The position numbers were made by a program, and so were the translations under genes. Positions 2,535 to 30,330 of a stretch of 31,187 nt of DNA are shown piece after piece. Where the stretch lies: assembly GCF_006345805.1 (NCBI RefSeq), contig NW_021832479.1, positions 1 to 31,187 on the forward strand, given 5' to 3'. The stretch is from Octopus sinensis (taxonomy: Eukaryota). A model generated the notes under the pieces. That model made no database searches. It saw nothing but the letters and a program-made list of their open reading frames with translations, and had not been told where the DNA came from. Position 1 is the stretch's first letter, and each line of letters begins with the position of its first letter.

Positions 2535-2608
2535 GTGCCAAGGAGATTGACATTGCTGCCACCTTAGAACACATCAGAGACCAGAGAATGAAAATGGTTA
2601 GAGTGAAG
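2535..2608 (+). CDS. PTPRN: Penultimate coding exon of IA-2/phogrin-like receptor-type tyrosine-protein phosphatase
   Basis: Acceptor ttttgcAG at 2533-2534 and donor GTcagt at 2609. Phase-1 start, phase-0 end, 74 nt. Translates (G)AKEIDIAATLEHIRDQRMKMVRVK, recognisable as the IA-2/PTPRN2 motif GAKEIDIAATLEHxRDQR. PTPRN versus PTPRN2 cannot be distinguished; the invertebrate gene is probably co-orthologous to both. Confidence 0.95.
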
Positions 2609-2678
2609 GTCAGTAGCTTTCCTTCTTTCTGTTCTTTCTTTCTTTCTTTTCTTTCTTTCTTCCTTCCTTCCTTCCTCT

Positions 2679-2985
2679 GGAGGCGCAATGGCCCAGTGGT
2701 TAGGGCAGCAGACTCGCAGTCAGAGGATCGCTGTTTCTATTCCCAGACCGGGCATTGTGTGTGTTTATTGAGCAAAAACACCTAAAAGCTCTACGAGGCT
2801 CCGGAAGCGGGTGGTGGCAACCCCTGTTGTACTCGTTCGCCACAACTTCATTCTCTCTTTCTGTTTCTTGAGTAACGCTGCGATGGACTGGCGTATCGTC
2901 CAGCTGGGGGGAACACATACGCCAGAAACCGGGAAACTGGGCCCATGAGCCTGGCTAGGTTTGAAAAGGGTGACGTTTATTGTTT
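2679..2985 (+). mobile_element. tRNA-derived SINE family D (Meta/V-like central domain), in last intron
   Basis: A box TGGCCCAGTGG, degenerate B box, central gctgcgatggactggcgtatcgtccagc. Same family as 9871-10182. Head shared with 28633-28910. Confidence 0.8.
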
Positions 2986-3112
2986 ATATATATATATATA
3001 TATATATATCAAAATATAATGTAAAATATTATATATATATAATATTTAATAATATTTTGATAGAAAATAAGTAAAATGTATGGTTACTCACCAATAATGA
3101 ATATTGATTTAA

Positions 3113-3334
3113 CCCTTTTGTTACCAACCTGGCTGAAACCGCCTCTGGTTCTGTAGTACAAATGTTTTGTTTTCATAAGTTTTGAATTAAAATCTTCCAC
3201 CAAACCTTAGTCGCAATTTATGTTCCTTACACTAGCTTAATGATAACTAAGTTATTTTACTAAATTCTTTGTCATATTTAAAATTAATTGAAAGAAACAC
3301 AGAGCATCTCAACAGAAATATGGTAACAAAAAGG
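3113..3334. mobile_element. piggyBac-like MITE, copy 1
   Basis: TTAA at 3109-3112 and 3335-3338. Terminal inverted repeats CCCTTTTGTTACCA / TGGTAACAAAAAGG. 222 bp, non-coding. Confidence 0.8.
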
Positions 3335-3365
3335 TTAAAATATATAATAGAGAAACAATTCTTAA

Positions 3366-3587
3366 CCATTTTGATACCAACGTGCCTGATACAACCTCTG
3401 GTTCTGTAGTACAAATGTCTTGTTTACATAAGTTCTGAATTAAAGTCTTCCACCAAACCTTAGTCACAATTTATGTTCCTAACACTAGCTTAATGATAAC
3501 TAAGTTATTTTACTAAATTCTTTGTTATATTTAAAATTAATTGAAAGAAACACAGAGCATCTCAACAGAAATATGGTAACAAAAAGG
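3366..3587. mobile_element. piggyBac-like MITE, copy 2
   Basis: TTAA at 3362-3365 and 3588-3591. Same TIRs and length as copy 1; 3' two-thirds nearly identical. Confidence 0.8.
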
Positions 3588-3638
3588 TTAAGACAATGAT
3601 GGAAATAATGAGAGTAATGACTGCACAACAAAGAAGAT

Positions 3639-3882
3639 TTAAAGTTTTTCAGGTGTCACCTCTTCTTCAGGTGTTTTAGGGGATGTCGTATCTTCCTGCA
3701 AATCTTTCTTGGTGGACTTGAAGAACACTGTGATAGGAAATTGCTGTCATTGTTTTTTCATGGTGTTGAGGAGAGTTTTATACATCTGCATGGCGGCATC
3801 GATGGCATTTTTAAATTGGAGAGACCGAACCATATGGGGATCCCATGCTTCCGTCTTCCCTTGCAATTCCTTGGTTGTCCTT
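3639..3882 (-). mobile_element. Tigger/pogo-like transposase remnant, C-terminal part
   Basis: Minus strand reads RTTKELQGKTEAWDPHMVRSLQFKNAIDAAMQMYKTLLNTMKKQ*QQFPITVFF..., the typical pogo/Tigger tail. Joins in frame to 4532 once the CR1 is removed. Confidence 0.65.
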
Positions 3883-4531
3883 GTTGTCCTTTTCGCCTTC
3901 GGCCCAGTGCGTCCATGCTGCCAACAAAGCACGTGGAGTTCTGTTTTTGATTCGACGGTCATTCGGAATGCTCACAGCAGCCATATTCCTACCGCTCTAT
4001 GTCACACTAGTGAGACCCATATTGGAGTACGGGATTCAAGCCTCTTCTCCTTATCTCCTCAAAGACATACAGCATCTCGAAAGAGTTCAGAAGCTGGCTA
4101 CTCGCATGGTTCTTGGTCTCAAGAATTTGTCTTATGAAGAAAGGCTGAAGACGCTTGACCTTTATTCTCTCGAAAAACAACTACGCCGTGGTGATCTCAT
4201 TCTTGCTCACAACATCATAAGCGGAAAGTGTAACCTCTTGAAAGAGCTGTTCTTCATTCCTGCTTCAGAGCGTCGGCTGCGGGGTCACTCCAAAAAGCTC
4301 TATCTGCAACGATTTCATCTCAATCGAAGGAGAGGGGCTTTCTCCATCCGGGTTGCGGATCCATGGAATAAGCTGCCGGACAAGATAGTGAAGATGCCGA
4401 CGACCGCTTGGTTCAAAGTCTCTCTTGACCAGAAATGTCCTGAACTTTTTGCATAACTCCATGTCCCCCTACATGGCCTTGCTTTTTGTTTTTTGAGCCA
4501 AAAAATTAAATTAACTAACTTAACTTAACTT
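3883..4531 (+). mobile_element. 5'-truncated CR1-type LINE (RT C-terminal region + 3' tail)
   Basis: ORF 3845-4456 contains ANKARGVL..IRRSF..LYVTLVRPILEYG...LERVQKLATRMV.GLKNLSYEERLKTLDLYSLE..RRGDLI...LRGHSKKL...FSIRVADPWNKLP. Ends in a (TAACT)n tail at 4511-4531. Confidence 0.9.
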
Positions 4532-4855
4532 AAAAGGTCAGACAGACGTTCAGTTGTCAGGCCCACCTCATCCTCCTCTTTCTCCAGATCTGGTGCTTCC
4601 ACCTCCTCTTCTCTGGCAGACTTAATTAACTCCAACAAATCTTCGTCGGTCAGAGTGGGCATTGATGATGTTGTTGACCTCATCTTGCATGATGTTGTCA
4701 AAACCATTTGCCTCCAAGTACCTTTGCCAGTTTCCCTGCATTGTTGAGGGCCTCATGCTGAACATCTTCAGGTGGGAAGTCCTCATCCTGGACACTCTCT
4801 GGCCACACCTTCTTCCAGCATGCAATAAGGGTTTCTTTTTCATTTGTTCCCTTTT
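4532..4855 (-). mobile_element. Tigger/pogo-like transposase remnant, upstream part
   Basis: Across frameshifts: ETLIACWKKVWPESVQD..EALNNAGKLAKVLG..GFDNI.QDEVNNIINAH..LTDEDLLELIKS..GLTTERLSDLL. Confidence 0.65.
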
Positions 4856-5145
4856 ATGTGCCTCAGGCATGGGAGCCAGTCAGGAAACACTGGCATCGAC
4901 CACGTTCAGCTTAAGGGCTCCACCAGAACAGGGTCCCATCAGGGGGCACTAGCCACAGCTGTGATTTTGGTTATACTTGACATATCAAGGGTACTCTTAA
5001 ATGGGCTGGACATGCAACACTGGCATTGGCCATGGCTGCGATCTCACTTTAGTTTCTGAATATTCTCAATCACAACCTGGAGGACTATAATGAATAAGAG
5101 GGGGCTGAGAACTGTACCTTGGTGAACCCCTACTTCTATGCTGGG
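4856..5145 (-). mobile_element. Internally deleted RTE-like LINE fragment
   Basis: About 5055-5140 on the minus strand reads VGVHQGTVLSPLLFIIVLQ (RT motif GVxQGxxLSPLLF). The remainder looks like a non-coding 3' part. Confidence 0.5.
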
Positions 5146-5219
5146 GGGGATATACATTCCTTATATATATATATACACACACACACACACATGCACACAT
5201 ATATATATGTCTATGTGTA

Positions 5220-5249
<30 letters not shown>

Positions 5250-5271
<22 letters not shown>

Positions 5272-5631
5272 AAATTAAGGATAAAATCTTTATAAGAAAT
5301 TATCAGTAGTTAGCGTGAAAAACCTCGTAAGAGAAAAAATCTGTAAATTTTTCCACTTTGAAAATATTTATTTATATTATATAGAGGGTACTATTATTCA
5401 TAGGTACCGACATGTATGCTATATTGTGTTTTTTCCTTACATGTCTTGAGTTCGTTGCACTGAAGAGCATAGAATGCATATTCTGCATTGATTGCGAAAT
5501 CACAGGTGATATGTAACTAAATTCTGTTTTTAAATGACTTGCTTTGAAGTTTTGCATTCGGTAAAATTTGTTTATTTTAGTAGTTTTGACTAGCGTGTCG
5601 GTACCTATGAATAGTACCTCTATATAATATA
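5250..5631 (+). mobile_element. PLE-type terminal remnant embedded in (TA)n, with inverted repeats 5373-5412 / 5596-5631
   Basis: (TA)n on both sides, an internal hammerhead, and a ~36-40 nt inverted repeat (tatattatatagagg..tactat..tcataggtaccgaca) differing only by two small indels. Confidence 0.65.
5454..5517 (+). ncRNA. Type I hammerhead ribozyme, canonical core, predicted cleavage AUA after 5511
   Basis: Stem I GUUGCA/UGUAAC. Core CUGAAGA 5460-5466. Stem II GCA...UGC with G10.1-C11.1. GAAA 5496-5499. Stem III AUCAC-AG-GUGAU. NUH = AUA. Confidence 0.85.
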
Positions 5632-5699
5632 CATATATATATATGTATCTATGTATGTAAATATATATATACATGTATATGTATGGAAAAGTGGGTGTT

Positions 5700-5958
5700 A
5701 AATCTATGATGCTGATGATGGTGGTGATGATGACAACGAGAGTAATGATGACATTGATGGAGATGGTGCTAACGATGATGACAATGATAACGACTGATAA
5801 TGATGACGATGATGATGGAAATGATGATAGTGTTGATGATGATGACAATGATGGTGATGATGAGGATGATAATGTGGATGACAGCAACTATGGTGACAAT
5901 GTTCATGATGTTGGTGGTGATGATGATATGGATGATGTTGAGAATATTGATGATGATA
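5700..5958. repeat. Degenerate (GAT)n/(GGT) trinucleotide microsatellite
   Basis: Direct reading. It produces the spurious poly-Asp and poly-Ser ORFs. Confidence 0.95.
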
Positions 5959-5999
5959 TATAATTAATTACCGTTGTTTTTTTTTATTTCTTGTTGCAG

Positions 6000-6071
6000 G
6001 AACAGTTCCAGTATTCACTCGCATTGGTTGCCGAGGAAGTCCACGCAATCTTGAAAGCTTTGCCTCAGTGA
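6000..6071 (+). CDS. PTPRN: Terminal coding exon of IA-2/phogrin-like PTP
   Basis: Pyrimidine tract + gcAG acceptor at 5998-5999. Phase 0, matching the donor at 2609. Translates EQFQYSLALVAEEVHAILKALPQ* (TGA 6069-6071), matching the hallmark IA-2-family C-terminus ..AVAEEVxAILKALPQ. Confidence 0.95.
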   Translation, partial: EQFQYSLALVAEEVHAILKALPQ

Positions 6072-12913: not shown

Positions 12914-13274
12914 CGTATGTGTGTGTATATGTTTGTGTGTTTGTCCCCCTAGCATTGCTTGACAACCAATGCTGGTGTGTTTACGTCCCCGTCACTTAGG
13001 GGTTCGGCAAAAAGAGACCGATAGAATAAGTACTGAGCTTACAAAGAATAAGTCCCGGGCTCGATTTGCTCGACTAAAGGTGGTGCTCCAGCATGGCCGC
13101 AGTCACATGACTAAAACAAGTAAAAGAGTAAGAGTACAATATTTATTTACTATTTATAGCTCTATGTACTTCAAGATTTGTTGTCCCCTGCTCCCCCCTC
13201 CCACCAAAGAATTATTTCAAATTCCCCTGGAGGTTTATAAAATTCTTATGCTTTCAATAACATACCATTCTCTT

Positions 13275-13674
13275 TCTCTTTTTTACTTGTTTCAGTCATT
13301 TGACTGCGGCCATGCTGGAGCACCGCCTTCGGTCAAGCAAATCGACCCCAGGACTTATTCTTTGTAAGCCCAGTACTCATTCTATCGGTCTCTTTTGCCG
13401 AACCGCTAAGTTACGGGGACGTAAACACACAAGCATCGGTTGTCAAGCAATGCTAGGGGGACAAACACAAACACACACACATACACATATATATATATAT
13501 ATACATATATACGACGGGCTTCTTTCAGTTTCTGTCTACCAAATCCATTCACAAGGCTTTGGTCGGCCCAAGGCTATAGTAGAAGACACTTGCCCAAGGT
13601 GTCAGGCAGTGGGACTGAACCCGGGACCATGTGGTCGGTTAGCAAGCTACTTACCACACAGCCACTCCTGCGCC
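13275..13674 (-). mobile_element. SINE family A, full length
   Basis: Reverse complement of the head aggcgcaggagtggctgtgtggtaag through the tail gaaacaagtaaaaaagag. Confidence 0.9.
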
Positions 13675-16683: not shown

Positions 16684-17376
16684 GGTACTACTAGCGAACA
16701 GTGGTCCCGGTGCGCGTACTCGCGCATCCGCGCCTGCTAGTCATGACTAGTCAATCCTTACTTTGTGTTTTTGTGTCTCTCTCTTTTTTTACTCTTTTAC
16801 TTGTTTCAGTCATTTGACTGCGGCCATGCTGGAGCACCGCCTTTAATCGAGCAACTCGACTCCGGGACTTATTCTTTTGTAATCCCAGTACTTATTCTAT
16901 CGGTCTCTTTTGCCGAACCGCTAAGTAACGGAGACATAAACACACCAGCATCGCTTGTCAAGCAATGCTAGAGGGACAAACACATACACACACACACATA
17001 TATATATATATATACATATATACGACAGGCTTCTTTCAGTTTCCGTCTACCAAATCCACTCACAAGGCATTGGTCGACCCAGGGCTATAGCAGAAGACAC
17101 TTGCCCAAGATGCCACGCAGTGGGACTGAACCCGGAACCATGTGGTTGGTTAGGAAGCTACTCACCACACAGCCACTCCTGCGCCTTTTGCTTAAAAAAT
17201 GATGTACTTTTTGTTTTTGTGTTGTATTTTACTTTGTTTAACAAAAATTATTAGAAAATTATTTATTTTGTGTTTTATTTAGTTTGATAGGTAGTCGTTG
17301 TAGGATCGACTAGTCACGACTAGCAAGCACGACTGCGCGTGTGCGTGCACAGGGACCAATGTTCGCTAGTAGTACC
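16684..17376. mobile_element. MITE with 75-bp TIRs (superfamily unassigned), carrying a SINE insertion
   Basis: TIRs 16684-16758 (ggtactactagcgaacagtggtccc..ctagtcaatcct) and 17302-17376 are colinear inverted copies, roughly 80% identical by eye. Confidence 0.75.
16785..17185 (-). mobile_element. SINE family A, full length, nested in the MITE
   Basis: Near-identical to the 13275-13674 copy. Confidence 0.9.
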
Positions 17377-21392: not shown

Positions 21393-21782
21393 AGGCGTAG
21401 GAGTGGTTGTGTGGTAAGTAGCTTGCTTACCAACCACATGGTTCCGGGTTCATTCCCACTGCGTGGCACCATGGGTAAGTGTCCTCTACTATAGCCTCGG
21501 GCTGACCAAAGCATTGTGAGTGGATTTGGTAGACGGAAACTGAAAGAAGCCCGTCGTATATATGTATTTATATATGTATGTATGTGTTTGTCCCCCTAGC
21601 ATTGCTTGACAACCGATGCTGGTGTGTTTACGTCCCTGTCACTTAGCCGTTCGGCAAAAGAGACCGATAGAATAAGTACTAGGCTTACAAAGAATAAGTC
21701 CTGGGGTCGATTTGCTCGACTAAAGGCGGTACTCCAGCATGGCCACAGTCAAATGACTGAAACAAGTAAAAGAGTAAAGAGT
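21393..21782 (+). mobile_element. SINE family A, full length
   Basis: aggcgtaggagtggttgtgtggtaagtagc...gaaacaagtaaaagagtaaagagt. Confidence 0.9.
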
Positions 21783-21917
21783 GCGTGTGTTTAATTAGCC
21801 AAAATCTATGACCATCACCAAATATAACAATAACTATATATATGTGTATATATATATATTTTGATTTTTTTTGATTTTCCAGTTTCAGCTAATGAGCTGT
21901 GGCCATGCTGGGGCACA

Positions 21918-23030: not shown

Positions 23031-23147
23031 GCGTGGCACCTTGGGCAAGTGTCTTCTACTATAGCCTCGGGCCGACCAAAGCCTTGTGAGTGGATTGGTA
23101 GACGGAAACTGAAAGAAGCCCATCATTATATATGTATGTATATATAT

Positions 23148-23198
<51 letters not shown>

Positions 23199-23420
23199 AT
23201 GTATGTGTGTATATGTTTGTTTGTCTGTGTTTGTCCCCCCAACATCGCTTGACAACCGATGCTGGTGTGTTTACGTCCCCGTAACTTAGCGGTTCGGCAA
23301 AAGGAACCGATAGAATAAGTACTAGGCTTACAAAGAATAAGTCCCGGGGTCGATTTGCTTGACTAAAAGGCGGTGCTTTAGCATGGCCACAGTCAAATGA
23401 CTGAAACAAGTAAAAGAGTA
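23031..23420 (+). mobile_element. SINE family A, 5'-truncated
   Basis: gcgtggcaccttgggcaagtgtc...gaaacaagtaaaagagt. Confidence 0.9.
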
Positions 23421-24185: not shown

Positions 24186-25085
24186 CTACCTTCAAAGTAT
24201 TCTCCATTTGAAGCAAAGCATCGGTCCAGACGCGTTTTCCACTGTTCGAAACAGTCCTGGAACTCTTACGAAATGATGCCTTTTAACGCCTCGGTCGTTT
24301 TGGGGTTTTTTCTTCGCCTCTTGCTCATCCGCAAAACGTTTTCCTTTAAGGAATTTTTTTTCATTAGGGAAATAAAAATAGTCGTAACGAACAAGGTCGG
24401 GTGAATAGGGAGAGTGGGAAAGCGGGATCATGCCATCTTTGGTCAAAAACTGTCTCACACTCAAGGCAGCGTGCGCAGGCGCATTGTCGTGATGAAATCA
24501 CCACTCCACTTTGCCACAGATCGGGGTGTTTTCATCTCACTGCGTCTCGCAAGTGCTTCAGAACTTCTAAGTAAAATGTCTGGTTAGCAGTTTGATCAGG
24601 AGGTACAAATTCTGAGAGGACAATTCCTTTCGCCTCGATGAAACAATTCAGCATCGTCTTGACAGCTTCGACTTCACTTGACGCACATTTTGTGGGGCGT
24701 GGTGACACCGAATGCTTCCATTGATTTGATTGCTGCTTCGTTTCCGGGTCGTAACCGTAACACTAGCTCTCATCGCCATTGATGATCTTCGAAAAAGAAT
24801 CCGGATCAACTTCCAACTGTTCTTTCGGTTCACAACACGCATTAAGTCGTGACAGCTTTTGAACTTCCCTGAGCAAGTGAGGTACAATATTTTCTGCAAG
24901 TTTTTTCATTCGCAATTTCTTGCTCAAAATTCGTTGGCAGAAGCTTCAGGACACACCAGTCATATCAACATATCGGTCCTCTAAGATCAGTACATGAATT
25001 TTCGTGATGTTTTCATTCGTCTGTGGGGTCGACGGTCGCCCTGAACGATGTTGGTCTTCAAGCAACCATTCCTAAAGCGTGAAAA
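24186..25085 (-). mobile_element. Degenerate mariner transposase remnant
   Basis: DPDSFSKIINGDES*CYGYDPETKQQSNQWK ... PLSHSPYSPDLV.YDYF..LKGKRFAD..E..EFQDCFEQWKTRLDRCFASNGEYFEG across frameshifts. Confidence 0.85.
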
Positions 25086-25177
25086 CCATATGTAAACTTG
25101 TGCTTTCCTTATGGCAGCGTTCTTGTTAACTGTTTGAGGCATATACAACTGTTTCGGCCGCCATTTTCTCCGGCAGA

Positions 25178-25424
<247 letters not shown>

Positions 25425-25484: not shown

Positions 25485-26083
25485 ACAGACAACATGCTTC
25501 TTTCAGTTTCTGTCAATGAAAATTGCCCGAGGTGCCACGCAGCGGAAGTGAACCCAGAATCTTTTACCTGGGGAGCAAACTTATCAGCACATAGTTATAT
25601 ATTTTGCTTGCATTTTGATCTTGAGTATCTGTGGAAGACACAAAGATCCGAAGAGCTAAACTTGGAAATCAGAAAAAATACCATCTACCTTGAGATAAGG
25701 GACACAACTTTTGCTAAATAAAATTTATAAGTTATGTCCCTTGGACTACTATCGCCATTTTTAGGCGATTTGAAAGTTATAGTTTACTTCTTTTTTTTTA
25801 CAATTGAAAATGCAAATGTTAAATTCTGTTCCAGAGTTTTCTTTAAAAAGGAAAGAAAAAGAAAAAGGATTCTAGGGAATAAATAATTGTTGTTGTTTCA
25901 AACTATCGAGACTATTTTTGTTGTTGTTGTTTAACTGGAGTTTAGGCCTCAATCGAAAAACACTACGGTTCTGAGCATGCACCGACTGTGTGTGTGTGTG
26001 TGTCTGTTTCTCTGATTGTGTATCTATCTGTGTGTCGGTCTGTATGCCTGTCTGTCTTTGTCTTTATGTGTGTCTCTGTTTAA

Positions 26084-26084
<1 letters not shown>

Positions 26085-26150
<66 letters not shown>

Positions 26151-26156
26151 CCTATC
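26085..26156. repeat. (CTAT)n microsatellite
   Basis: Direct reading. Confidence 0.97.
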
Positions 26157-27268
26157 AAATGCACCAACGTGGACATGGAGCAACCGCAGTGGGTCGTCGA
26201 GATCGTATCTAGATAGGATACTGTGTAGAACAGTAGACAGGGATAACTTAAGATGTCCACAATTCCACACAGTCAGCTACACGGACCACAAATTCGTGAC
26301 GTGTACGCTAGGCTTAAATAAGGCACATAGACAGGGTCCCGGTTACTGGAAACTGAACGCATCTTTCCCGTCCAGACAGGTTTTCAGAGACAGAATCAAC
26401 ACGTTATTAAAGAGGGCTTTAACGGGATCCATCGTCAACAACAAATGGTGGTTCGCCCTCAAGAGAGCAGTAAAAACGGAAGCAATTAGATATAGCAAGG
26501 CACTAGCAGAAGATAGAAATAGAGTAGAGGGTGATTTAGTTAAGAAGTTAGAAGAGGCAATAAGAAGCGGCATCACATCCGACGTTTTAGCGGCGAGGTT
26601 GGCCCTCGACCAACACTTCAACGCCAAACACGAAGGGTGTGATGTCAGGGCTAGGATGCGTGCTCTAAGGATGGAAGGTGTTGGAGCCGCGAGAGAGGCC
26701 CGGGTGGCGGAGGCGCAGCAGGGCAACAAAGCCACCATTCGGTCTCTGGTAGACGAACAAGGGCGCGAATTGCTCGAGCTCAGCAAGATGTGCGAGGCAT
26801 TTCAGCGACACTTTGCCCGACCGTACGGGACGAGTGGCGAGCGTGAACGCAGGGTGGACTTCAGTTCGTACCTGCACAGCCTGCCACGACTCTCGGCAAG
26901 AGAGGCAGAGTGCTGCGAAGGTGTCATCACGCGGCGGATGTGCGGGACGCAAGGCAGAAATGCTCGAGAGACAAATCGCCGGGTCCGGGTTAGGATGGTC
27001 TGCCCTACGAGTTTTACAATTGTATGCCAATTGTTTGGAGGACGTCTTGGCAGCGGTATACTGCAACTGGCAGCAAAACGGGAGCATACCCGGTTTTGTG
27101 AGTCGAGGAGCCGTAACGCTGCTGAAGAAAGATCCAAACAAGGGGTACATTATAGTTAACTTTAGGCCAATCACTCTGCTCAATGCAGACCTGAAAATTT
27201 TGACAAAGGTGTTAGCCAAGAGGTTGGCGCTTGTCATTGAGAAACTGGTCGACAAGGCGCAAACGTGT
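26157..27268 (+). mobile_element. Tx1/L1-group LINE ORF2 internal fragment (AP-endonuclease C-terminus to RT N-terminus), pseudogenised
   Basis: TWSNRSGSSRSYLDRI...YTDHK...GPGYWKLNAS...; KSPGPG*DGLPYEFY; GAVTLLKK..NFRPITLLNADLKILTKVLAKRL..V...AQTC. Two frameshifts near 26933 and 27030. GC-rich relative to the flanks. Confidence 0.88.
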
Positions 27269-27274
27269 CTCTGT

Positions 27275-27625
<351 letters not shown>

Positions 27626-27683
27626 CGCAGCTTACCTTGTGGTTCGGTGTCGGCATTGGGTCGCATTGGTATTGAGTTCGAAC

Positions 27684-27895
27684 TGGCACCCTATCGATTA
27701 CGACGACGTGTGTTCCAGTTCATCCGATCAGCTCCTCATGATATTAACGTGTAAGTGGCTGAGCACGTCACAGGCACGCGTACCCTTAACGTAGGAGATT
27801 CAGCGTTCAACACAGAATGTGACAAGGCTGGACCCCTTTGAATAACAGGTACTACTCAGTTTTGCCTGCTGAGTGGTTAACTGGAGCAATGATAA
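27684..27895 (-). mobile_element. SINE 3'/central fragment (cephalopod-type)
   Basis: ctggcacc..ttacgacgac..gttccagtt.atccgatca..attaacgtg.aagtggctgagcac..cacag.cacg.gtacccttaacgtag. Recognised from memory only. Confidence 0.5.
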
Positions 27896-29299: not shown

Positions 29300-30330
29300 A
29301 ACACATGGTTGGCATATATTTTTCCAACACTTTTTCTATTGAATTTTTTGGGAAGACGGTGATGGTGTCGAAGGACTTGGAGTAAGTCCTCAACACCACC
29401 GTCTTCTTTTCAAATTCTTTCAACCATTTTTTGGTTGGTGTAATCTCCCACTCCACAAGTCTTTCATTGTTCTTTCCCATGTTTAATTAAAGAAAAAGTC
29501 CAAAAACAGTTCATAAAGTTCAAATAATCACAGAGAAAAAGAAAGAAAGAGAAAGAAAGTTCCAATAAAAAGGAGGAGTGGCTTGTTTACCAACAACATG
29601 GTTCCGGGTTCAGTCCCACTGCGTGGCACCTTGGGCTAGTGTCTTCTACTATAGCCTCGGGCCAACCAAAGCCTTGTGAGTGGATTTGGTAGACGGAAAC
29701 TGAAAAGAAGCCCGTCGTATATATGTATATATATATATATGCGTGTGTGTGTTTGTGTGTCTGTGTTGGTCCCCCTAGCATTGCTTGACAACCGATGCTG
29801 GTGTGTTTATGTCCCCGTTACTTAGCGGTTCGGCAAAAGAGACCGATAGAATAAGTACTGGGCTCACAAAAGAATAAGTCCCGGGGTCGAGTTGCTCGAT
29901 TAAAGGCGGTGCTCCAGCATGGCCGCAGTCAGATGACTGAAACAAGTAAAAGAGAGTTCAATAAAGGGTTCCAAAATGAAAGATAGAAGAAGAAAGCAAC
30001 AGTTCAACACAGCAAAAATATTTTTTAGGCCACCTGGAACACAGCTTCTCACAGTTGTTGAAAAATTATTCCAAAAATATTTCACAAAGTTATTCTTCAA
30101 CAGGAACAATTTAATTGAGAACAACACTATTTTCAAAGTAAGTTTAGAGGCGGAATACGCCCCAAGCAGTAATTCTCACAATTAAGCGAGAAAAACAAAA
30201 TGCTCTCCTGCAGGCAGACCAAAGCCCAGAATCCAGTGAGGACTCCTTGCTTGTACAAAAAATAAATCTCTCAAACAACGAACCCCACTGAACCCAAAAA
30301 GCAAAAAGTCTTACCTTACAGTAGAGCCTC
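29300..30330 (-). mobile_element. Possible 5' end (UTR + ORF1 start) of a LINE, interrupted by a SINE
   Basis: Non-low-complexity ORF starting at 29480, MGKNNERLVEWEITPTKKWLKEFEKKTVVLRTYSKSFDTITVFPKNSIEKVLEK, cut off by a microsatellite. The assignment is a recollection and has not been verified. Confidence 0.3.
29573..29953 (+). mobile_element. SINE family A with approximate TSD agttc(c)aataaa
   Basis: Family-A body with a short 5' internal deletion. Flanks aaagttccaataaaaagg / agttcaataaaggg. Confidence 0.88.

Follow-up and report, generated by a model that had tools for sequence, protein, structure and literature searches.

Animal genomes harbor many hammerhead ribozymes that are borne by mobile elements, and the roles of these ribozymes in host genes are largely unknown. 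Animal hammerheads of type I have been described mainly in non-LTR retrozymes (PMC7229834) and in Penelope-like elements (PMC4209133), and their canonical form combines a helix II of 4 bp with a helix III of 1–2 bp that carries a palindromic loop (PMC4209133). Retrozyme units in animals are tandem repeats of 150–450 bp, with less than 45% GC and a high degree of self-pairing (PMC7229834). A recent proposal derives them, as non-autonomous elements, from Penelope-like elements; their solo monomers are dispersed, with approximately 43% of the Xenopus copies residing in introns (bioRxiv 10.64898/2026.07.22.740005). Penelope-like elements are themselves highly 5′-truncated, carry hammerheads in their pseudo-LTRs, favor (TA)n and other microsatellites as targets and are frequently accompanied by an adjacent, inverted 5′-truncated copy, which gives rise to flanking inverted repeats (PMC8557442). 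In animals, their hammerheads are minimal forms with next to no helix III, and function as dimers (PMC4209133).

Self-cleaving RNAs have also been described in the introns of vertebrate genes. Conserved intronic hammerheads are found in amniote RECK, CTCL and DTNB, and are thought to be derived from retroelements (reviewed in PMC6155905). The HDV-like ribozyme of CPEB3 modulates its own mRNA, the amount of which rises when the ribozyme is blocked; it is located 9.9 kb before the next exon and has a half-life of 2–3 min, matched to that distance (PMC10919898). According to a passage of the same article that cites earlier work, slow ribozymes left splicing unaffected.

In this work we analyze a hammerhead motif in a 31,187-nt stretch of Octopus sinensis DNA (contig NW_021832479.1, positions 1 to 31,187), hereafter the window. 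We read the region 5374–5630, with about even confidence, as the insertion of a small, AT-rich, hairpin-forming, non-autonomous mobile element, a passenger that carries a predicted type I hammerhead. The locus would probably be an instance of a kind already known, in which a mobile element carries a hammerhead motif into an animal intron. The supplement of PMC7229834 contains no cephalopod hammerheads, and among the papers searched that mention both hammerhead ribozymes and octopus, none is about a cephalopod hammerhead in its title or abstract; a cephalopod example may therefore add a lineage to those described.

The hammerhead motif and its gene context

The exons flanking the motif were located by tblastn with the C-terminus of human PTPRN. 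The penultimate coding exon of a PTPRN/IA-2-like gene (2535–2608, forward strand, ..AKEIDIAATLEHIRDQRMKMVRVK) is preceded by AG and followed by GT, and the last coding exon (6000–6071, forward strand) encodes EQFQYSLALVAEEVHAILKALPQ followed by a stop codon. The last intron between them (2609–5999, forward strand; 3391 nt, phase 0) holds the element, and a pyrimidine tract and an AG at 5998–5999 precede the last coding exon. The PTPRN C-terminus search returned only short exon or transcript fragments at 85% identity or below, none from the same species, and those listed as “receptor-type tyrosine-protein phosphatase N” reach as much as 85% identity. The tblastn exons and their splice boundaries confirm an earlier note on this DNA, which had placed the motif, in sense orientation, within the last intron of the IA-2/PTPRN gene; the distance of about 480 nt that it gave to the 3′ splice site at 5999 amounts to 488 nt when counted from the predicted cut site to the end of the intron.

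Two simple repeats lie close to the splice sites of this gene. An imperfect (ATG/GAT)n array (5706–5883), organized in about ten copies of an 18-nt higher-order unit, takes up the greater part of the intron's final 300 nt and stops approximately 115 nt upstream of 5999, the 3′ splice site; it is purine-rich on the sense strand, generates long spurious reading frames on both strands and could affect branch-point or splice-site use. Directly 5′ of the penultimate exon, about 90 nt of (ATT)n microsatellite (2440–2530) adjoin the 3′ splice site and occupy the place of a normal pyrimidine tract.

Sequence reading and a descriptor scan both identify a complete type I hammerhead consensus at 5454–5517 on the forward strand. 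Helix I pairs GUUGCA (5454–5459) with UGUAAC (5512–5517) through 6 bp, including one G·U, and its 5′ strand is followed by the conserved box C3–A9, which reads CUGAAGA (5460–5466). Helix II (5467–5495) extends over 29 nt in all, starting with G10.1–C11.1, C–G and A–U, and continuing through a symmetric 3×3 internal loop into 6 bp closed by the loop UAUUC. The segment 5496–5510 comprises G12 A13 A14 (5496–5498) and helix III (5499–5510), in which A15.1–U16.1, U–A, C–G and A–U are capped by the loop CAGG. By hammerhead numbering, A17 corresponds to A5511, so that the predicted cut falls between 5511 and 5512 at an AUA site. All the conserved core positions (C3 U4 G5 A6 N7 G8 A9, G12 A13 A14 and H17) are present, three helices surround the core with helix I open, as in the type I topology, and 19 of the 19 pairs are standard.

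Past the internal loop formed by C5453 and U5518 A5519, helix I is prolonged by five extra pairs (5448–5452 with 5520–5524), and the hammerhead with its extended helix I thereby spans 5448–5524 on the forward strand. Natural type I hammerheads usually have their “loop 1” as an internal loop within a longer helix I, and the extension observed here matches that layout. Fast cleavage by hammerheads in cells depends on tertiary contacts of loop 1 with loop 2. In the motif, internal loops follow the first 6 bp of helix I and the first 3 bp of helix II, a geometry compatible with loop–loop contact, and no conserved contact nucleotides were recognized. The stricter pattern CUGANGA/GAAAY/RUH, applied in its supplement by the group that catalogued animal hammerheads (PMC7229834), is likewise found in the 5454–5517 motif.

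The Rfam covariance models for hammerheads gave no match at their gathering scores over the whole window, and no match even at E ≤ 10 on 401 nt or on 80 nt. This failure is probably explained by three departures from the canonical animal form, namely a helix II that is interrupted and 29 nt long, the AUA site and a helix III of 4 bp. The motif had previously been called a “fully canonical” type I hammerhead, a description that holds for its core nucleotides but fails for helix II, which is atypical, and for the Rfam models, none of which recognizes it; G10.1–C11.1, the 6-bp stem I, the AUA site and the coordinates 5454–5517 were all upheld by the sequence reading and the descriptor scan.

When set against the described systems, the motif resembles the hammerheads of animal retrozymes in its type I topology, its full core and a helix I of 6 bp that leads into an internal loop. 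It departs from them in its helix II, which is long and interrupted where theirs has 4 bp, in its helix III of 4 bp with a non-palindromic tetraloop where theirs has 1–2 bp, and in its AUA site and its failure to match the Rfam Hammerhead_1 model. The hammerheads of Penelope-like elements share the type I motif, as found in retroelements, but differ in the minimal, dimeric form outlined above. Helices II and III are atypical, and fit neither of the known animal hammerhead subtypes. The intronic hammerheads of RECK, CTCL and DTNB are also of type I and also reside in introns of protein-coding genes, but they combine deep conservation with canonical loop–loop contacts of the sort that are not recognizable here. 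CPEB3 offers a parallel in that a self-cleaving RNA, here a predicted one, lies in the intron of a neural gene, where cutting by the CPEB3 ribozyme competes with co-transcriptional splicing; the two differ in fold and in their distance to the next 3′ splice site, which is 488 nt in the octopus gene and 9.9 kb in CPEB3.

Chance rate, folding and expected activity

The motif is the only match to the hammerhead descriptor on either strand of the 31-kb window, and it is still the sole match when the helices are relaxed to 3/2/2 bp or when helix III is made optional. A set of 300 dinucleotide shuffles of the window yielded 0 matches with at least 5 bp in helix I, 3 bp in helix II and 4 bp in helix III, and 40 Mb of first-order Markov sequence with the composition of the window yielded 0 matches at the observed stringency and 1 match at the relaxed 4/3/3 setting. 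Analytically, we estimate a chance rate of approximately 2e-9 per position and strand, which corresponds to about 1e-4 per window. The estimate for a single 250-bp element is about 1e-6, and around ten chance matches would be expected per genome for an assumed genome size of ~2.7 Gb. A chance origin of the motif is consequently unlikely, although less so if very many windows were scanned.

For the 64-mer, the hammerhead fold has a free energy of −12.1 kcal/mol, compared with −13.3 kcal/mol for the minimum free energy (MFE) structure (z = −0.71), and the active fold is predicted to make up 2e-2 of the ensemble when the motif is taken in isolation, and from 1e-3 to 1e-6 when it is part of longer transcripts. 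As positive controls, the coral Amil224 and mussel Mg353 hammerheads, with sequences taken from the supplement of PMC7229834, were evaluated with the same measure and gave lower shares, from 6e-4 to 1e-7. Both are active ribozymes, with measured cleavage rates of 0.8 per min for Amil224 and 0.1 per min for Mg353, and validated invertebrate retrozyme hammerheads cleave at about 0.1–0.8 per min, taking one to several minutes; the mussel hammerheads lack most of the loop–loop contact nucleotides and yet reach 0.1 per min (PMC7229834). Since these validated ribozymes score lower than the octopus motif, the energy model provides no argument against the activity of the motif, and we rejected the proposal that it is inactive on the grounds that the hammerhead fold is not the MFE structure.

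We infer that the predicted hammerhead probably cuts after A5511, and that it does so slowly, on a scale of minutes. Because helix III has 4 bp, it should be able to act as a monomer. If it does cleave, the locus would offer a compact natural test case, consisting of a monomer-competent hammerhead on the sense strand, near a 3′ splice site, in a neuroendocrine gene.

The inverted repeat and the class of the element

The hammerhead is contained in a unique, non-palindromic core of 183 nt and 32% GC (5413–5595, forward strand), bounded by the left arm (5374–5412) and the right arm (5596–5630) of an inverted repeat. The arms pair over approximately 35 positions with two bulges, the left arm having an additional G and an additional 3-nt unit, and their duplex has a predicted free energy of −48.2 kcal/mol (RNAduplex). 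The earlier note had put the repeat at 5373–5412 and 5596–5631, with about 36 bp; the repeat is real, and our delimitation shortens it to about 35 bp. Its further suggestion that the duplex would hold both cleavage products has the right geometry, with arms that flank the cut site.

The outer ~10 nt of the arms (ATATTATATA / TATATAATAT) are indistinguishable from the flanking (TA)n and match TA microsatellites across the whole window, so that the specific parts of the arms are reduced to about 5384–5412 and 5596–5620. An (AT)n microsatellite (5199–5268) lies 105 nt upstream of the left arm, and a (TATA)n-like microsatellite (5621–5684) borders the element on the right and overlaps its end. Next to GAGG...CCTC, the flanks read TATATA on both sides, a sequence that is both palindromic and microsatellite-like, and any target-site duplication is for this reason inseparable from the palindrome or the microsatellite. 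Rfam matches to microRNAs at 5616–5698 (mir-297, mir-1277 and others) score 20–35 bits against gathering scores of 80–100, and were dismissed as artefacts of the palindromic (TA)n and (TG)n repeats in that segment.

The 257-nt unit as a whole (5374–5630; 31–32% GC) folds with an MFE of −85.2 kcal/mol (z = −7.6), a value that no shuffled sequence reaches. It is not a long degenerate palindrome, a possibility that was rejected on finding no inverted self-similarity above the null expectation in its central 183 nt. The window contains no other copy of the element, whole or partial, and no specific direct repeat of the unit; the direct-repeat families detected in the window are exclusively TA-rich and microsatellite-like.

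With its length of ~250 nt, its low GC content and its strong self-pairing, the element falls within the description of retrozyme units, whose solo copies are dispersed and in many cases intronic, and a solo retrozyme monomer is a possible identity. Unlike retrozymes, it shows no tandem repetition and is accompanied by no second ribozyme, the 31-kb window holding a single hammerhead and, on either strand, neither a second one nor a Penelope-type minimal hammerhead. The inverted repeats and the (TA)n surroundings would fit the pattern of Penelope-like elements (PMC4209133; PMC8557442), with an inverted copy and a microsatellite target, although a MITE would give the same picture. Unlike Penelope-like elements, the element has no pseudo-LTR and no Penelope-type reading frame (reverse transcriptase plus GIY-YIG) beside it. 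Given the absence of both this frame and the minimal hammerhead, only a very short truncated or non-autonomous Penelope copy fits. A 5′-truncated copy occupying 5413–5630, with an upstream inverted copy of its last ~35 nt at 5374–5412, would explain the arms as well as the presence of the hammerhead.

The features of a MITE are also there, in that terminal inverted repeats of ~30 bp surround a short, unique, AT-rich and non-coding core in an element of about 250 bp with TA-rich flanks; the flanks obscure any target-site duplication, the window holds no further copy, and no MITE is known to carry a ribozyme. A MITE explains the arms equally well, but it accounts for the hammerhead only by chance (~1e-6), and for this reason we lean toward a heavily 5′-truncated Penelope-like or retrozyme copy as the origin of the element, on what is a circumstantial fit, and keep the MITE as the alternative. 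A mobile-element origin, which had been proposed before, is in either case plausible for a hairpin-forming unit that adjoins a microsatellite.

Several additional searches were carried out with the element and its surroundings. A tRNA-derived SINE was rejected, as ARAGORN detects no tRNA. A protein search with the 85-codon open frame on the minus strand of the element returned nothing from a collection that does not contain the source genome, and an exact look-up of five reading frames of the window, beside or across the element, found none on record in public assemblies. A 19-mer of the arm had one match among metagenome contigs, in an unrelated contig of bacterial appearance that resembles the element in nothing but those 19 bases, and this match was attributed to chance.

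Pre-mRNA behavior, rival explanations and neighboring repeats

In the pre-mRNA, the arms would form a stem of ~35–45 bp around a loop of ~180 nt, within which the hammerhead would fold and cut after A5511 at a minutes-scale rate. The polymerase reaches the right arm only ~80 nt past the ribozyme, and a clamp that holds the cleavage products in register would be expected to favor their religation. RNA polymerase II crosses 488 nt in an estimated 10–15 s at commonly quoted elongation rates. Cleavage at the expected rate would be slower than the travel of the polymerase to the 3′ splice site, so that most transcripts would be spliced normally. A cut, where it occurred, would concern mainly the intron, as a slow nick at most, and we infer that the element is a passenger that serves its host gene in no dedicated way. 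If the hammerhead cleaves, the duplex that bridges its cut site would make it possible to answer whether such a clamp neutralizes an intronic ribozyme.

The main rival to a mobile element with a putatively active hammerhead is a fortuitous match, in which an ordinary AT-rich MITE or foldback element happens to contain a hammerhead consensus that was never selected and that is inactive or negligibly active. We regard this explanation as possible but doubtful. The weak, AU-rich helices of the motif, the z-score of −0.71 of the 64-mer, the AUA site, the atypical helix II and the lack of an Rfam match are all what a chance assembly would look like, and so is a single copy with no tandem partner in the window. 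The ~10 matches expected per genome of the assumed ~2.7 Gb become relevant if many windows were scanned, as may have been the case, and in the literature searched, hammerheads are not linked to any element bounded by such repeats at its termini, in inverted orientation. These points are countered by a chance expectation of about 1e-4 per window, which is lower when the extended helix I is counted and about 1e-6 per 250-bp element, and by a predicted fold that is at least as favorable as that of validated ribozymes. A different explanation of the same combination of features would make the hammerhead the conserved cargo of a family of DNA transposons with terminal inverted repeats, and the locus the first ribozyme-carrying MITE; we consider this improbable, and found no hammerhead-bearing element bounded by terminal inverted repeats in the literature searched. 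Were it true, the terminal stem would constitute a built-in clamp that keeps the cleavage products together, which would favor religation or splicing across the break and turn intronic copies into reversible nicks.

The two remaining explanations assign a role to the locus at the level of the transcript. The dsRNA stem could be the relevant feature, as a substrate of ADAR or of another dsRNA pathway, with the hammerhead irrelevant. The ADAR option put forward in the earlier note is sound to the extent that a near-perfect intronic duplex of ~35 bp is a generic ADAR-type substrate, and the length of the stem (35–45 bp), the fold of the whole element (−85 kcal/mol, z = −7.6, unmatched by shuffles) and the arm duplex (−48 kcal/mol) all point in this direction. 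Such a substrate is nevertheless generic to any intronic inverted repeat, and the stem, with over 370 nt between it and the nearest exon, would produce no recoding; we consider this explanation quite unlikely as an account of the locus. Lower still in our estimation is the idea that the host has adopted the ribozyme to attenuate or time PTPRN pre-mRNA co-transcriptionally, with the inverted repeat acting as a clamp that permits splicing. The sense orientation of the motif in the last intron, the arms that bridge the cut site (−48 kcal/mol) and the precedents of RECK, CTCL and DTNB (PMC6155905) and of CPEB3 (PMC10919898) speak for it. The proposal of a “timer or attenuator” of a neural gene is, however, unsupported, and such a role is also kinetically unlikely: the 488 nt to the 3′ splice site, compared with 9.9 kb in CPEB3, are covered by the polymerase in ~10–15 s, whereas validated invertebrate retrozyme hammerheads cleave at 0.1–0.8 per min. 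The slow ribozymes without effect on splicing that are mentioned in the cited passage of PMC10919898, the lack of a recognizable loop–loop motif for fast cleavage, the two indels by which the arms differ and the resemblance of the unit to a mobile-element insertion beside a microsatellite likewise argue against host adoption.

Other repeats and mobile-element remnants occur elsewhere in the window. A remnant of a mariner-type DNA transposase is present on the reverse strand at 24192–24708, where a fragment matches Pfam Transposase_1 (PF01359) with E = 1.9e-8; the arms of the hammerhead element bear no resemblance to it. In the intron preceding the one that holds the element, a weak match to zf-RVT (PF13966) on the reverse strand (1754–2014; E = 0.0015, below the curated cut-off) suggests another putative retroelement remnant. 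Long frames on the forward strand at 25990–27754 resemble a degraded non-LTR retrotransposon split by a long tetranucleotide-type microsatellite that codes for “LSIY”, and gave no significant Pfam match. The window's commonest SINE-like repeat, recognized by its recurring translations “..DCGHAGAPP..” and “AAMLEHRL”, is present in at least six copies on both strands (~13040–13370, 16765–16970, 21600–21790, 23060–23410, 25100–25300 and 29775–29945), and a search of the protein collection with its frame identified one related contig of 538 bp (ENA ERZ1023377).
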